Below are positions 14,893 to 24,441 of a stretch of DNA of 64,000 nucleotides, in pieces. The stretch's first letter is position 1, and the number at the start of each line of letters is the position of its first letter. Made by a program: the position numbers and the translations under genes. Source of the stretch: Prasinococcaceae sp. CCMP 1430 (Eukaryota; Plantae; Prasinodermophyta); NCBI GenBank assembly GCA_013416795.1, contig RQSC01000023.1, positions 89,768 to 153,767 on the forward strand. The letters are read 5' to 3'. The notes under the pieces were generated by a model that was given only the letters and a program-made list of their open reading frames with translations, made no database searches and was not told the DNA's origin.

Positions 14893-16592
14893 ATGCCGCA
14901 GAAGCGCGCCCGCGGCGACGTGCCCGAGGAGGCGCCCGCTGATGGCACGGCTGGCGCCGGGAGCCCCGCGGCTCGCGCCGGGCCGGCGCCGTCGTACCCC
15001 TACTGGGCGAGCGCTGACTGCCGCGGCGTGCTGACCAACGGAGGCGGTTTCCCAGAGGTCGGCATTCCGCCCTCCCACGCATACGATCGCGTGCGTCAGT
15101 ACAGCCTGCTGGACTTCCAACCCTCGCTCAACACGTCGTCATACGTGAACGTCATGGCCGATCAGTACGAGCACGAGCTCTTCGCGCTGGGCAGCCGCAT
15201 CAACATAGCCGATCAGACCATTTATACGGGCTCGTTTGAGCTGCACAACGACGCGCTGGCAATGGTCGCAGACCTTTGGAACGCGCCCATGGGCGCGCGC
15301 GTCGACGGCGGGCCATACCCCGGCTCGCAGACCGTGGGCTCGACGGAGGCGTGCCTGCTCGCCGGCCTTGCCCTCAAGTTTCGCTGGCGTGCCTGGCGCG
15401 CCAAGCTCCATCCCGGCGAGGAGCAGCCTCCGATGCCCAACCTGGTGATCAGCACTTGCTTCCAGGCGTGCTGGGAGAAGCTCTTCAAGTACATGGACAT
15501 CGTCCCGCGCATAGTCGCGCCCACGATGGACATGACGCTGGATCCCGCAAAGGTGGCCGAGGCGTGCGACGAGAACACCATGGGCGTCGTCTGCATTCTA
15601 GGCAACCATTATTCTGGAGCCTACGATCCGGTGAAGGAGGTGTCGGACGTGCTCGACAAGTTGAACGCCGAGAAGGGCTGGCAGATCGGCATCCACGTCG
15701 ACGCGGCGTCCGGTGGCTTCATCGCCCCCTTCATCGCCAAAGACCTCGTGTGGGACTTCCGCGTGCCCAACGTGCTATCCATCTCGGCCTCGGGCCACAA
15801 GTTCGGCCTGTCGTGCTGTGGCACGGGCTGGGTGGTGTGGCGCCAGCGCGAGGACCTCGCCGAGCACGTGGCGATCTCAGTGAGCTACCTCGGCGGCGTC
15901 GGGGAGTCCTACACGCTCAACTTCAGCCGGCCCGCGACTGGAAGCTACGTGCAGATGTACAAGTTCCTGATGCTGGGGCGCGAGGGCTACTCCATGGCCG
16001 TGAGGAACCAGATGGACACCGCCGCGCGCATTCGCGCGGGGCTCAAGGCCATGATGGGCCCCGACGGCGTCACGCCGCGCTTCGTCATCCTGGATAAGAG
16101 CGACAGAGCCCCCGACGGCTGCCTGCCCGTCGTCTGCGCGATGCTCAACCCCGATCTGAAGTTGCCCTACGACGACTGCGACCTGTACGTGCGCCGCAAC
16201 GCCGCGCCCGCACGATGGAGTGCGCGCACGTCGCGAAGGGCGTGCTCACCCTGACGCTCTCGCCGCCGCCCCTTTCGCTCCCTTTCCGCCAATGCGCCTA
16301 CCGCAGGCAGCACGTGTGCGCCGAGCGCCACTGGTACATATCGGGCTATCACTTTAGCTACAAGCACCCCATCACGGAGCAGACGCTGCCGCTCTGCAGC
16401 GACGTGCCTGCGGAGCAGTCGCTCTTCCGTGTGGTTGTCAAGGCCAACCTGACGCGGCAGCTCGCCGAGGATCTGTTGGTGGCCGTGCGCGAGACGGTCG
16501 TGCTGATGGACGAGGCCGGCGCCGGCTTCCGCGATATGCACCGCAAGAAGGTGCCGCGCCCCGTTCGCGGGCGCCACGTGGCCGCGTGCTGA
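14893..16592 (+). CDS. GAD: Glutamate decarboxylase (PLP-dependent); intron 16185..16306
   Basis: GSTEACLLAGLALK, IHVDAASGGFIAPF, PLP lysine motif SISASGHKFG and TLNFSRP. The intron joins CDL to QHVCAERHWYISGY. Confidence 0.93.
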
Positions 16593-16905
16593 CCTAGCTA
16601 TTATACCGCCTGGAAGGCCGTTGATCCTACACATCCGGCGCTACGGCGCGCGCTGTGGTGCGGCACAGCCGCGCGTGTAGGCGCTTTGACCCGCGCGCAG
16701 TCTCGCGACGCTGACGCGGTGCGTGGTGGCGTGTACGACAAACGTGAGTAAGTTAGCGTACTTGACTTGTAGTCGGTCTCTCTGGCTGATCCTTAGGCTC
16801 TTGCTCGTTCGGCGTGGGCGTCACGAATTTCACGCTCAGATCGCGCACGAGTGTTGAAAACTGCCGCGCCCGCGTGGCTCGCGCCACTGGCGGCGGGCGC
16901 CCTAT

Positions 16906-17600
16906 CTACTCCGCGCAGAAGGGGCTGAACGGCTCGCTCGCGGAGTTGCACAGCGCGTCCTCGCACACCTCCTCGAAGTCGTGCAGCGCCACCTCGAGGG
17001 TGATCGGCAGCAGGTCCTCGTCGCACGTGTCGTGCGCCATCAGCACCGACTGGAACGCCGCCGCGCACGCGTCGGACGAGCAGTCCTCAATGCACTGGGT
17101 GTCGAGGATGGCGATGTCCGCGAGCAGCTTGGCGCTGTCGCTGCAGTCGGCGACCGGCGGGCAGGCCTCGAGGTCCTCGTCGAACTGCCTGGCGATCTCG
17201 CAGTCCTCGAAGTTGTCCTCGTACAGGTGCAGCTTGGTCTCCGCCTCGAGCGGCAGGTCGTGGTGGGGGCAGAAGTCGTGGTGCGACTGAAGGATGTAGT
17301 AGTTCATGTGGCACACCTCCTCGTCCGCCTCGCTCTTGGAGACCAGCATCTCCGTCTGGCAGTTGGCCTCGAGGTAGTCCAAGGCCGCCACCACCGGCGC
17401 GGTGTTCTCGCAGTCGATCGCGAAGCCCATCTCGTTGGCGACGCACGCGCACGACTCGCCGTGCTCGTGCTCGTCGGCGGGGTGGGGCCCGGAGGCCTTC
17501 TCCTCGTCGTGCATGTCGTGCCCGTCCGCGTCGAGGTGGTGCGCGGCGCGCACGGCGGGCGCCGCGGCGGCGGCCCCGGAGGTGGCGGCCGCGGAGACGA
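16906..17600 (-). CDS. Acidic Cys/His-rich two-repeat protein, probable metal (Zn) binder; 5' end unresolved
   Basis: His-rich linker (HHLDADGHDMH...HEH) followed by two related units, each with DC..C..C..HDxC..LP..E..LHxY/FE. High GC3 codon usage. Confidence 0.7.
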
Positions 17601-18756
17601 CTTACAGGGCGCCGAGCGCGCCGAGGCAGGGGGAGGTGTGGGCGCGGCTGGCGAAGTCCCGCGCTGAGTTCCCCGTCGGCGGCGATCGCTTCGGCCGCTC
17701 CGAGGCTGCCGCTGCCGCGCGCGACGAGGCGATCGCCACTCGGACGGCCAACGCGGGCTTCGGCAAGTCCGCCGCGCACCGCAAGCTGCAGGAAGGTGCG
17801 GAGGTGGGAAGGGAGAGGCGTGCACGCGCGTCGCTCCCTGGCACGAGCGCGCGCCGATCGCGCCCTGCGGGATGCGCGCGACGCGCACGCGACCCTCGCG
17901 CTGACAGGTGCCCCCGCACCTCTCGCTCACGCGCGCAGCCGACGGCCCCTTCGGCAAGTCAGCCGAGCACGAGGCGGTGCGCCAGGCCAAGGCCGTGCAG
18001 CTCGACCGCCTGGCGCCGTGGCTGGACTCGGCCACCGCCGTGCACGCCGCGCCGCACGTGATGTGCGTGGGCCCCCGCGAGTGGGCGCTCTCGCTCGTGC
18101 GGCTCACGTCGGACGGCGGCGGGCGCTCGGCCGCCGAGCGCGCACGCGCCGACCCGAGTCCAGGGGGGGGGGGGGGGGGGGGGGGGGGGGGGCGGGGGCA
18201 AGGGGCAGTGTTGTGGCGCGGGAGCTGGACCCTCCCACCCCCCCGCGCGGTGCCGGCTGGGCGCTGGGCGGCGCCGCCGATCGGCGCGCGCGCCGGATAA
18301 AAGATGAAACGTATTCGCGCTGCGCAATCACGCGCACGCACACATACGCACACACTCACACACACAACACACAAAACGTGTGTTTGTGTGTGTGCACGCA
18401 CACACACGCTCACACACGCACACACACGCACACACACGCACACACACGCACACACACGCGCAGACACACACGGGATCTTCGCGCCCGCCTTCGACCCCTC
18501 CGAGCCTCCGACGTACCAGCGCCGTCCGTTTCGACAGCGGCGAGTCCTCCGATGCGCGCAGGGTGCGGCGCTGTGCCCGGCGGGCGCTCCGGGGTCCCAC
18601 CCACCCCACGTGGCGCGGGCCGCGGCGCGAGGCCACGTGGCGGTGAACGAGCTACGCGCGCTGCGGGAGGAAATATCTCCGGACTGCGCCGAGGACTATG
18701 TGTACCGCACGCGTGCGCCACACGCACGGGCGGGCATGCACCACACGCGCGTGTAC

Positions 18757-18824
<68 letters not shown>

Positions 18825-18825
18825 N

Positions 18826-18882
<57 letters not shown>

Positions 18883-18958
18883 GCCTTTGAGCGCCAGGAA
18901 AATGGCACGCCGCATCGTTGACAGTGCAAACGACAGGCTGCGCAACCTTTTCTGCAAG
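17600..18958 (+). CDS. Possible multi-exon gene of unknown function with FGRS/FGKS repeats
   Basis: Phase-compatible intron 17796..17938 with GCTGAC. Coding-like segments (FGKSAEHEAVRQ, GIFAPAFDPSEPPTY, KMARRIVDSANDRLRNLFCK) are separated by (CA)n tracts. The frame is uncertain across a poly-G run. Confidence 0.4.
18760..18879. repeat. (CA)n microsatellite; further CA/TG tracts at about 18340-18460, 25200-25350, 29440-29495, 30212-30296, 30560-30640, 30930-30970, 31545-31665, 32348-32398, 41558-41588
   Basis: Direct reading. Several contain a single N or abut gaps. Confidence 0.95.
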
Positions 18959-19190
18959 GTTTTGTTTTTGCTGGGTTTGGGTGTGGTCATTAGGGTTTGT
19001 GGTCGTATTGATTTGATGAGACGTGCTCGCGCTCGCGCTCGGGGCGTGACTGCCGTGCAGTGCGGCGTGCATCGGGGCCGAGGCCGGGGCTGGCGGGGGG
19101 CAAGGGGCCGCAGGACGCGCGCTCGGCGCTCGCTGCCACACCACACGCCGCGCGCGGCCCTGGCGCACGCCCAAGCGCGGCGCGGCCGCC

Positions 19191-20056
19191 ATGGCGTCGC
19201 CCGCGCGGACGCTCTACGACTTCGAGATAGGGAGGCTGGGCGCGGGCACGCGCGAGGCGCCCGTCGCGGGCGGGCCGCTCGACCTCGGGGCCGCCAAGGG
19301 CAAGGTGGCGCTCGTGGAGAACGTCGCCGGCCTATGAGGCACGACCGTCAAGGACTATCTCGACCTCGGGGCCGCCAAGGGCAAGGTGGCGCTCGTGGAG
19401 AACGTCGCCGGCCTATGAGGCACGACCGTCAAGGACTATCTCCAGATGAACGAGCTAGTCGACAAGTTCGGCAGCGAGGACTTCACCATCCTCGCGTTTC
19501 CGTGCAACCAGTTTTACCGCCAGTCGCAGGACACCGACCTCGAGACGCTTTCCCTGCTGAAGCATGTGCGCCCCGGCAACGGCTACGTGCCGAAGTTCGA
19601 GCACTCCACCAAGATTGACGTCAACGGCGCGAATGCCCACCCCATATTCAAGTGGCTGCGCGAAACGCTGCCGACCCCGGTCGACGACGCTGGCAAAGTG
19701 ATCATGCGAGACCACACGTGCATTGCGTGGGACCCCGTCGAGCGCAACGACATGTGCGTCGCGCAGCTCGCTCCGCCACCGCGCGCGTCGGTGGAATTCG
19801 CTGGCGCGTGCCGCGACGCCTCGCGCGCAGTAGGCTCCCTCTGACATCTCGCTTGTGGTCCCGCACGCCGCGTGCGTCGCTGGCGCCTGGTGTGCTTTGC
19901 GCTCGCTGCTGCGCGCAAAGCTCGTGGAACTTCGAGAAGTTCCTCGTGAACCAGAAGGGCGTGCCCGTGCGCCGCTACTCGCCCAAGTTCGCCACCATCG
20001 ACATCGCTGCCGACATTGAGGCGCTCATCAAGGGCGGCCCCGATGCGCTCGCCTAA
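19191..20056 (+). CDS. GPX: Selenocysteine glutathione peroxidase (GPx1/2-like); in-frame TGA at 19335 and 19416; intron 19754..19920
   Basis: VENVAGL-TGA-GTT active site, [21 protein letters not shown]|SWNFEKFLV; SECIS downstream. Confidence 0.93.
19278..19442 (+). repeat. Exact 81-bp in-frame tandem duplication within GPx
   Basis: 19278..19358 is identical to 19359..19439, with CTC microhomology at the boundaries. Confidence 0.97.
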
Positions 20057-20249
20057 GCGTCGCGAGGCGGCGTGCCCGGGGCGATTACTTGCCTCGATGC
20101 CAATGCCGCGCGCGACCCAGCAGGGACATTGCTCATGCGGCGGGGCTTGTCCGGAATAGGCGCTGTACGCAACGCTCAAGTCCTCTGCGCGGGACACCCC
20201 TGCGCACAACTGCCAGCTTCAACGTACGTGAGCCGATCTCATACGCCAC

Positions 20250-20315
20250 GCGACCACATGACGGCACCGCCACAAATCCTCAGAGGACGGCGGACGCCCG
20301 ACAAGTTATGGTGAC
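20250..20315 (+). promoter_or_regulatory. Type II SECIS element in the GPx 3' UTR
   Basis: ATGA at 20258-20261; stem GGC-A-CCGCC pairing with GGCGG-AC-GCC; unpaired AAA at 20274-20276; minihelix TCCT-CAG-AGGA; GA at 20300-20301; lower helix ACCA/TGGT. Confidence 0.88.
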
Positions 20316-20874
20316 GGGCCGCGCGGCAGTAATACGAGGCCGGCAGCATTCAGCAGGGAATCCGGCCCGCCAGTAGTTGCAATGCGGGAAAGGAAAGTAA
20401 CAAAGATGCAGATACTTCGCCGAGAAGTAGTACTACTGGAAGTACAGATGGGGAGGGCACTGGCAGGTCACCGCGCCTAGATTTATCGGCAGGAATGAGG
20501 TTAGGTGGGCGCAGCGGCGTGTGGCGGCTGGCTGGAACCTAGGAAAAGTTTGTACAGTACACGTGCGCATGCAACCGAGATCGAAGGCTGATAACGGTCG
20601 CGCGTGTGAGCATGCGGGGAGTGTGTGCTCCGACGCATGAGCGCGTGCCACGTGCACACAAGCATGTGGCAGTTGATTCGGATTCGAATAGCAGCCCAGT
20701 GTGGTAGTTGCCGGCGCGGGTGCGCCCATGCGTTAGTTGATTGGATGGATGTGGTTGAGTGGGACCGAGGAGCGTGTCGGTGCGCCGGTGCGCTGCGGCG
20801 GGTGCCACAACGCCTGCTCCGCGCATCCGCAGCCCCACTTCCTGCCCCGCTTCGCAAGCCTTTCCGCAGCGATC

Positions 20875-21994: not shown

Positions 21995-22952
21995 GCGCGG
22001 CCCCGAGCGCACGCACGCTGCCGCCACCGACGCGGCAGCGCGCTCCCGCCGTACCAAGCGCCGCCGCCCGATCACAAGCCCCCTAGGCCGCGCGTACATT
22101 GATCGCTTGCTTCCCCTGTGTGGATATCATCAACGTATTTATTGTCCCGACTGAAGCACAGCCGCCTCTGGACTGCCCATAGGCCACACCCACAGGAGCG
22201 GCGCGGCGCAGGCGGCGCTGCGCGGCACTGCTGCCGCCAGGCCGAGCAGTCGGCGAGCACGGCGCCTCACTACCTCCCAACAGACACGCTCGGGGTGGGG
22301 GTGGAGGAGGATGGTGTAGTCGAAGGTGAGAGGAGCGGCCCGGAGCCTGGCTGGGGAGGGGCCGGGGGGGGAGCGGACGCCCGCGCTCTCGGACGCACAC
22401 CCCCTCCGCCTCGTCCGAAATTTGCGCGGCGAGTCAGCGGCCTGTTTACCTGCGCAACGACCCGTCGCAGCGCCCCGCGCGCGGCGATCGGATCCCGCGC
22501 CGGGAAAAAACGGAGCCCGCCGCGGACCCAAAACGCCGCGCAGGCACCACGTACATACGTACGTTCGCACAGGTACGCTGTAGAATTCCTAGGTCAAATC
22601 GAACGTATTTCAAAACACGCAAACGAATGAGGGAGGTCCGCACGTCAAAGCGCATTGGGAGAGCGGAGCGCAGGTCAAATCGCATTGAAGTCCGAGAATT
22701 TATTTGAGTTCCCTCGGGCAAGTCCGCGGGGCCGCGGCCGATGGGGAACGCGCGCGCCGGCATGCCGGGCGCGGGGCGGGCGCGCGATGCGTGTGAGTGA
22801 GCGCACTCACTCCCGCGCGCGCGTGCTCCCCCTCTCCCTCGCTACCCCTCTTTTGCGCGCTGGCGGCGCCGCGGTGCCACACGGGGCGGCAGGCACGGGG
22901 CGTGCCCCGCCCGGCCACAGCAGCAGTGCTCTGGTCTGTCTCGCTTCGCGCA

Positions 22953-24441
22953 ATGCCCGGCGTGCGCGGGCCAGTCGCGCTCGCGGCGCTGTTCTGCGCG
23001 GCCGCGTGCGGAGCGGCCGCCGGCGAGCAGCTGCCGAGCAGCTCGTCCGAGGACTGCTCGAACCCTTTCGGGCCCGAGCCCAGCGAGCGCGCACGGCTGA
23101 TCAGCTGCTTTGACGACGCCTCGATCGTCGCGCAATATGACAGCGACCTCTTCCTGGCCGAGGCCGTCACCGGCGCGATCGAAGAGATCGAGGGCACCAC
23201 CAAGGGGCTCATGTTCGCCTTTACAGTGCAGGTGCGCGAAGAACGAACGAGCCAGTGGCGTCGCCGCGCTGGCGCCGTTGCCGTCAAGGGCAACGGAGAC
23301 GCGCTGCCTTTGTTTGCGTGCGCGCCAGGGCGCAGCCGGCCCGTGCACGTATGCGCGCTGCTCGCGCGGCTCCTCTTTCTTCGTCGTCGTCGTGCGAGCG
23401 CCTGCTCGCTGACTCAATGTCCTGCCGCACATCACGCCTCTCGTTGCGCAGGCGGACACGGGCGCATGCAACAGCACGACTCTGGGCATTCCGAGCAAGT
23501 TGTGCACCCTGGTCGAGTGCCTGGCAACCACAGAGGCTGCCCTGGGCGACTTCTCGACCTCGCTGCTCGCCGACCCGGCCCAGCTGCCGATCGGGCCAAT
23601 TAAGCGCATGTGCGAGGACTGCGTCGACGCCTACCTGAGCCAGCACATCCGATTGGGCACGGGCCCCTTCGAGGGCGGGGCAGGCAGCGGCGCGGGGTGG
23701 CAACTCTACTGCGTGAAGTCCTCTCCCAAGAAGGCCGTATCTCTCCTGACGGCCGGCGGCGGCGGCGGCGGCGGCGCCGGCCCGCGCACCAGCGCCGGCT
23801 CAGGCGGCGGCGCGGGCATGCAGGTCCTCCTCCCGCGCATCGACCCGACCATCGCATGCAGCGGTGGCGGGTGCGGCGTCGAGTCCGACATGGGCGAGAC
23901 GAACGCCACCGGCATCGTCAAGGACGCGTGCGACGAGGAGCAGTTCGTCGACGGCATCCGCCGCGTCGAGCGCAGCATCCGCAACTGCGCCAACATCGGA
24001 CGTCTCAGCCTGCGCGGCGGCGGCGGTGCCGGCGGCGGCGTGGAAAACACCGAGGATGGCGCTGACGCGCTGCTCTACCGCTTCAGCACCGGCTTCTCCT
24101 TCGGCTTCGGGCCGAACCCGATTCCGGGGGGAGGCGGCGACGGCAACCAGACGTGTGCCCAGTTGTACAGCACCCAGCTGTGCGACAACGCCGGCTTCCC
24201 TCCGTCGGGGCGTGACTCCTACCAGCTGTGCGAATGCCCCGTCACGCAGCTCTACTCGCCGCCCCCGTACGCGTACAACTGCACCAACGGCCCCATCCCG
24301 CCGCCCGAGCAGCCCGTGACTGCCGCCGAGATCGCCGCCAACTGCGAGGAGTGGTGTCCAGGCGTGGTCATCGATCCGGACACCAATGAGCCGTGCGCTC
24401 CACTCCCCGAGTGTGCGAACTGCCCATATACGTTTGAGTGA
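22953..24441 (+). CDS. Secreted Cys/Gly-rich protein; intron 23232..23451
   Basis: Signal peptide MPGVRGPVALAALFCAAACGAAA, phase-0 intron with CTGAC, and many Cys and N-x-S/T sequons. Confidence 0.75.

Follow-up and report, generated by a model that had tools for sequence, protein, structure and literature searches.

The window, by which we mean the whole 64-kb stretch of DNA analysed, carries a two-exon glutathione peroxidase (GPx) gene in which an exact in-frame duplication has produced two TGA codons. By its sequence features, the gene is a eukaryotic selenoprotein gene and a GPx1-like member of the GPx family. Its parts are the following:

19191–19753, + strand: exon 1 of the GPx1-type selenoprotein gene, assigned from the translation and a Pfam GSHPx match; its end is set by the joint 19753>19921 in RNA run X16
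19754–19920, + strand: intron of 167 nt, GT..AG, skipped in RNA run X16 and missing from the MMETSP transcript L002
19921–20058, + strand: coding part of exon 2, with TAA at 20056–20058, assigned from the translation and L002
20250–20312, + strand: type II SECIS-like stem-loop in the 3'UTR, with AUGA at 20258–20261, AAA at 20274–20276 and GA at 20300–20301

The ATG at 19191 is the first in-frame ATG downstream of an in-frame stop. The part of exon 1 that follows the second TGA (19422–19753) matched Pfam GSHPx (PF00255) with 70.9 bits (cut-off 27), and the GPX1 structures 2F8A (E = 4e-30) and 1GP1 (E = 1e-29) were matched as well; the N-terminal piece is also alignable to GPX1. The spliced translation contains the catalytic Gln (FPCNQF) and Trp/Asn (WNFEKF) once each and the Sec motif (NVAxxUG) twice. 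Codon differences between exon 1 and its nearest relatives comprise 7–12 synonymous and 1–4 nonsynonymous changes, which shows that the gene as a whole has been under purifying selection. Automatic gene calling breaks this one gene into three ORFs, which is a warning for selenoprotein annotation. This green-lineage GPx (19422–20055) is nearest to the animal GPx1-type tetrameric enzymes, not to the GPx4/plant type: among solved structures it best matches human and bovine GPX1, and proteins from crab and bivalves come to ~55% identity.

The stem-loop at 20250–20312 scored 18.7 bits with Rfam SECIS_1, under the gathering score of 35. Its AUGA..AAA..GA motifs and helix are kept in 11 related loci while the surrounding 3'UTR diverges, and the apical mini-stem changes among them in its loop only. 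RNA contigs stop at 20360–20391, which places the element inside the transcript; in the spliced mRNA, the two UGAs precede it by ~673 and 754 nt. On these features we take it as a type II SECIS. The 3'UTR thus has one SECIS-like element, in line with the one SECIS proposed when the locus was first described.

Several features of the surroundings differ among relatives or affect annotation. In distant relatives (L002:1–284 compared with window 19080–19190), in-frame upstream ATGs open an Ala/Arg-rich, targeting-peptide-like N-terminal extension. The window lineage and its close relatives carry ACG or GTG at those positions together with the upstream in-frame stop, so that their GPx starts at 19191; its localisation may differ from that in the distant relatives. 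The gene is closely preceded by long (AC)n/(GT)n microsatellites (18755–18880 and 18322–18483, one of them interrupted by an N at 18825), which give rise to spurious Rfam microRNA matches. Downstream, a 2.37-kb segment at 22054–24423 is cleanly missing from the syntenic Tara scaffolds L009, L011 and L012, where the joint has no N and only a short CC microhomology. This segment is an insertion/deletion polymorphism, and inspection of its ORFs and repeats revealed no recognisable content.

An exact 81-bp tandem duplication in the gene and in the reads

The duplication lies within exon 1 and comprises the following features:

19278–19358, + strand: copy 1 of the 81-bp unit, 27 codons covering strand beta2, strand beta3, the Sec loop and the start of helix alpha1
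19335–19337, + strand: first in-frame TGA, codon 49
19359–19439, + strand: copy 2 of the unit, a 100% match to copy 1 that continues directly into the remainder of helix alpha1
19416–19418, + strand: second in-frame TGA, codon 76, which corresponds to the one TGA conserved in the relatives and is continuous with the rest of the enzyme
19440–19442, + strand: CTC microhomology flanking the duplication, with the same CTC at 19278–19280 and 19359–19361
19332–19388, + strand: junction-specific stretch from the end of copy 1 to the start of copy 2, which formed a separate contig among those built from read k-mers

Tandem Repeats Finder reported 19278–19442 as a tandem repeat of period 81 with 2.0 copies, 100% matches and 0 indels. 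A scan of the window found that identity at period 81 spans 84 bases, that is, the 81-bp unit plus the CTC at 19440–19442. An exact tandem repeat of 81 bp cannot arise by chance, and outside microsatellites the 64 kb hold no other exact tandem duplication with a period of at least 15. No second place for the GPx gene or for the 81-bp unit, as a paralogue would provide, was found in the window. The 27-codon unit is translated twice from the ATG at 19191, with both TGAs in frame with the rest of the GPx. The window contains 12 runs of N, of which the nearest to the duplication is the single N at 18825. The preliminary description, which had reported an exact 81-bp (27-codon) repeat, in-frame TGAs as codons 49 and 76 of a frame shared by the ATG and the remaining enzyme, and CTC microhomology with no N at the junction, agrees with these results throughout.

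To follow the duplication in sequencing data, Logan contigs (k = 31) of two DNA and two RNA runs were placed on positions 19100–20400; the read evidence consists of these contigs and their assembler k-mer depths, not of individual reads. At this k, a tandem duplication predicts an entry contig ending at 19307, a shared interior, a junction-only stretch at 19332–19388 and an exit from 19413, and all four kinds of contig were recovered. The depths in the two DNA runs were as follows:

DNA run X1: junction (19332–19388) 96.5; exit (19413–19468) 98.3; interior (19359–19442) 170
DNA run X8: junction 104.3; exit 103.7; interior 200.8 and 213.3; flanks 88.5 and 92.5

The two runs come from different studies and carry two organism labels, and both give a junction:exit:interior ratio of ~1:1:2. 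With the junction equal to the exit and the interior at twice that depth, exactly two copies are present in essentially every genome copy of both cultures, and the duplication is fixed in the sequenced cultures. The junction contigs have 27 bases left of the junction, fewer than the 31-base bridging rule; the string ...CTATGAGGCACGACCGTCAAGGACTAT then CTCGACCTCGG... at the junction is impossible in a single-copy gene. X1 or X8 may be the source sample of the assembly itself, which makes them a proper control for an artefact, though not an independent one for other strains. More broadly, 15 DNA runs (two organism labels and ten studies, not necessarily independent strains) contained 0.96–0.97 of the sampled words. 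The preliminary description had named reads with a single copy as what would refute the duplication; the check did not refute it, since X1 and X8 carry the junction at full single-copy depth.

A more distant gene type (that of loci L002–L008) is present in X8 at ~10 depth units; in the DNA runs it does not amount to a full-copy paralogue, and it accounts for contig breaks at 19317 and 19468/19469. A 23-mer of the junction had no match among JGI metagenome contigs, a search that was uninformative, as a 23-mer of the single-copy exit was likewise unmatched. The exact unspliced ORF of the window had no match in the protein collection.

Transcripts across the junction

The duplicated AAG|GT creates an interval with the ends of an intron:

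19305–19385, + strand: candidate 81-nt GT..AG interval, whose removal would restore a single-copy mRNA

Exactly one such unit-length GT..AG interval exists. RNA run X17 yielded a 99-base contig (19332–19430) that crosses the junction with 0 mismatches, so that the RNA-seq check once suggested for this locus finds the duplication expressed. The junction in RNA comes from X17 only, coverage of X16 upstream of 19439 being too low. In X17, the AAG-bearing interior (19320–19361) has a depth of 641.7 and the AAG exit (19413–19463) a depth of 319.3. If u stands for unspliced transcripts, s for spliced ones and c for other AAG-type transcripts, the interior equals 2u + s + c and the exit u + s + c, which yields u of ~322 and s + c of ~0. 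The 99-base contig is composed of 27 junction and 42 interior k-mers, and its depth of 522 compares with the 514–548 expected if the junction equals the exit. This indicates that essentially all transcripts of the GPx gene keep both copies. The mRNA stands at ~320–356 assembler depth units along the junction, the exit and the 3'UTR.

Two GPx types are present in X17, the window type with the duplication and a type with AAG replaced by GCC at 19431–19433. The latter (Val-Ala-Asp-Tyr) is identical here to the Tara loci L003–L008 and has ~2.5 times the depth; it was found in neither of the DNA runs X1 and X8. This makes X17 either a mixed or cross-contaminated sample or one from a different strain.

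Relatives and the age of the duplication

In the protein search, the nearest named relatives were P. singulare (84%) and an MMETSP transcript (85%), which puts the gene in a Prasinoderma-like green picoalga. An origin from Aureococcus, considered for the high GC content, was discarded on account of these matches. The GC content of the window (70%) agrees with the genus Prasinoderma (PMC7455551), for which the published P. coloniale assembly is PacBio-based and chromosome-level (PMC7455551). We gathered 23 related loci, 22 of which span the duplication site. The close set consists of Tara and other ocean metagenome scaffolds with 94–98% nucleotide identity, and the more distant gene type (L002–L008, in which L002 is the spliced MMETSP transcript) has ~82–88% identity, with L003–L008 at 82–86%. 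Synteny with the window extends over several kb in three of the Tara scaffolds (L009, L011 and L012) and in the ENA contig L001, at ~94–95% nucleotide identity.

A single copy of the 81-bp unit was present in all 22 loci that span the site, and the junction in none. In 21 of the 22, the homologous codon is still TGA, the exception being the coverage-1, indel-noisy L001. With one copy in every relative, the duplication arose after the split from relatives that are only ~2% different. The identity of the two copies does not help to date it, since relatives with 96–98% overall identity also match the unit at 100%. The duplication is thus a real, young, lineage-specific in-frame allele, and the single-copy state of all 22 loci supports the suggestion, made in the preliminary description, of a recent allele. 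Two in-frame UGAs were found in the window lineage only, with no multi-Sec conservation across species, and no finding speaks for a di-Sec GPx that is conserved or selected.

The exceptional locus, L001, is ENA contig 'chicken_3 NODE_11500', with a coverage of ~1, from an assembly labelled as chicken. It is Prasinoderma-like, 94% identical to the window and syntenic with positions 15594–20334; it has not kept the Sec codon. Contamination or environmental read-through is its probable origin.

The encoded protein and its place among known systems

With moderate confidence, we read the locus as a young in-frame duplication allele that is most likely neutral or mildly hypomorphic, and not adaptive. 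It probably originated by replication slippage or unequal exchange at the CTC microhomology. According to the alignment with GPX1, the unit comprises strand beta2 (LDLGAAKGK), strand beta3 (VALVENVA), the Sec loop and the first turn of helix alpha1 (TTVKDY), and only copy 2 is contiguous with the remaining alpha1 and the downstream core. Copy 2 would accordingly take the canonical place in the fold, codon 76 being the catalytic Sec, since it leads straight into the remainder of alpha1 and on to the Gln, Trp and Asn residues; from this arrangement, the catalytic Sec is most likely supplied by copy 2. Copy 1 would form a 27-residue excursion that loops out after the N-terminal hairpin and ahead of strand beta3 and bears a spare Sec at codon 49. 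The predicted product has 232 residues in place of 205, that is, an insertion of 27.

The two UGAs lie 81 nt apart in the mRNA, in the same local context, and share one SECIS-like element. As a 3'UTR SECIS is expected to act on any upstream in-frame UGA, and the local context is identical, both UGAs would be recoded as Sec, with a lower overall yield. Recoding of several in-frame UGAs by a 3'UTR SECIS, whatever their number, is established for SELENOP (PMC5727441), and Sec insertion is often tolerant of the position of the UGA, as seen in TR3 (PMC3737529). Each recoding event competes with termination (PMC8704476), which points to a full-length product at reduced yield. Translation into a two-Sec protein is plausible on these grounds.

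A null or strongly disabling allele appears unlikely. The first UGA might mostly terminate translation or trigger mRNA decay, or the insertion, in the core of beta-strand, Sec loop and helix, might block folding; equally unlikely is the accompanying proposal that the gene is functionally lost in the lineage and that other peroxidases cover for it. Such a loss would fit the way in which two successive recodings multiply their inefficiency (general knowledge; PMC5727441, PMC8704476), the duplication of a buried core strand in the GPX1 alignment, and the fact that the duplication is tolerated by no relative. However, the abundance of the mRNA in X17 (~320–356 depth units) argues against strong decay, the remaining gene, intron and SECIS are intact, the insertion is in frame and the recoding context is the same at both UGAs.

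An adaptive enzyme, into which both Sec residues are inserted and in which the extra Sec segment is functional, we regard as quite improbable. The same holds for the forms that it might take: an active two-Sec GPx in which both UGAs are decoded and the spare Sec serves as a resolving selenol, forming a selenenyl-selenide with the catalytic Sec, or drives a strand-swapped (domain-swapped) oligomer. The duplication is expressed and is fixed, at full depth, in cultures that were sequenced in 2020 and 2024; its unit, which is in frame, takes in the entire Sec loop. Against this, the duplication is missing from 22 of 22 related loci, some of them 98% identical, and the copies are identical and give no sign of subfunctionalisation. 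Literature searches for a GPx with a duplicated Sec site (di-Sec GPx) found no description that could serve as a precedent. If the idea were true, a newborn catalytic variant would have been caught just after its origin.

Very improbable in turn is a nascent intron, with its 5' site at 19305 and its 3' site at 19385, whose splicing would remove 81 nt and leave a normal single-Sec mRNA. Tandem duplication of a segment with AGGT is a documented route to new introns, shown elsewhere (PMC3265369, PMC4974935), and the duplication offers exactly one suitable GT..AG interval. Yet X17 contains the junction, and the depth arithmetic leaves ~0 single-copy (spliced) transcripts; the candidate 5' site, GTGGCG, differs at positions 4–6 from the GTGCGT of the confirmed intron, and the interval is half as long as that 167-nt intron. 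Finally, an assembly or gap-closing artefact in a truly single-copy genome is scarcely credible: the window belongs to a gapped draft with 12 N runs and all related assemblies have one copy, but an artefact cannot place junction k-mers in reads, and two DNA runs, each of a different study, show these k-mers at full single-copy depth, with the interior at twice the depth, the junction recovered in an RNA run as well and no N close to the repeat.

The young in-frame duplication allele that we favour is readily placed beside its closest counterparts. The Prasinoderma orthologues (Tara L009–L023, the MMETSP transcript L002 and the P. singulare protein P0003) share the gene, the position of the intron, the TGA and the SECIS-like element, and differ in having one 81-bp unit each where the window has two. 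In comparison with GPx1 (human 2F8A and bovine 1GP1), 110 residues align with no large gaps, the oligomerisation loop included; the segment GKVxLxENVAxLUGTTVxDYxQMNEL is nearly identical, and the catalytic Sec, Gln and Trp/Asn are all there. Here, however, the 27-residue segment extending from strand beta2 into the first turn of alpha1 is present twice, with two Sec codons, whereas known GPxs have one. The model of intron gain from AGGT shares with our locus an exact AG|GT tandem duplication that produces a unit-length GT..AG interval, the removal of which restores the original mRNA; the difference is that the interval is kept here in RNA contigs, as judged from contig depths in one run.

SELENOP likewise has more than one in-frame UGA upstream of a 3'UTR SECIS, and the same recoding logic would apply (PMC5727441). 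Its UGAs are conserved and functional, and it has two specialised SECIS elements (PMC5727441), whereas the second UGA of the window GPx is a by-product of recent duplication, served by one ordinary SECIS. The locus is an allele of a strain lineage, and no new enzyme family or class. Set against these systems, it offers a natural experiment on whether one ordinary green-algal SECIS can serve two UGAs in the same context, on how far the thioredoxin-fold core of a GPx tolerates insertion, and on what decides whether an AG|GT tandem duplication turns into an intron.
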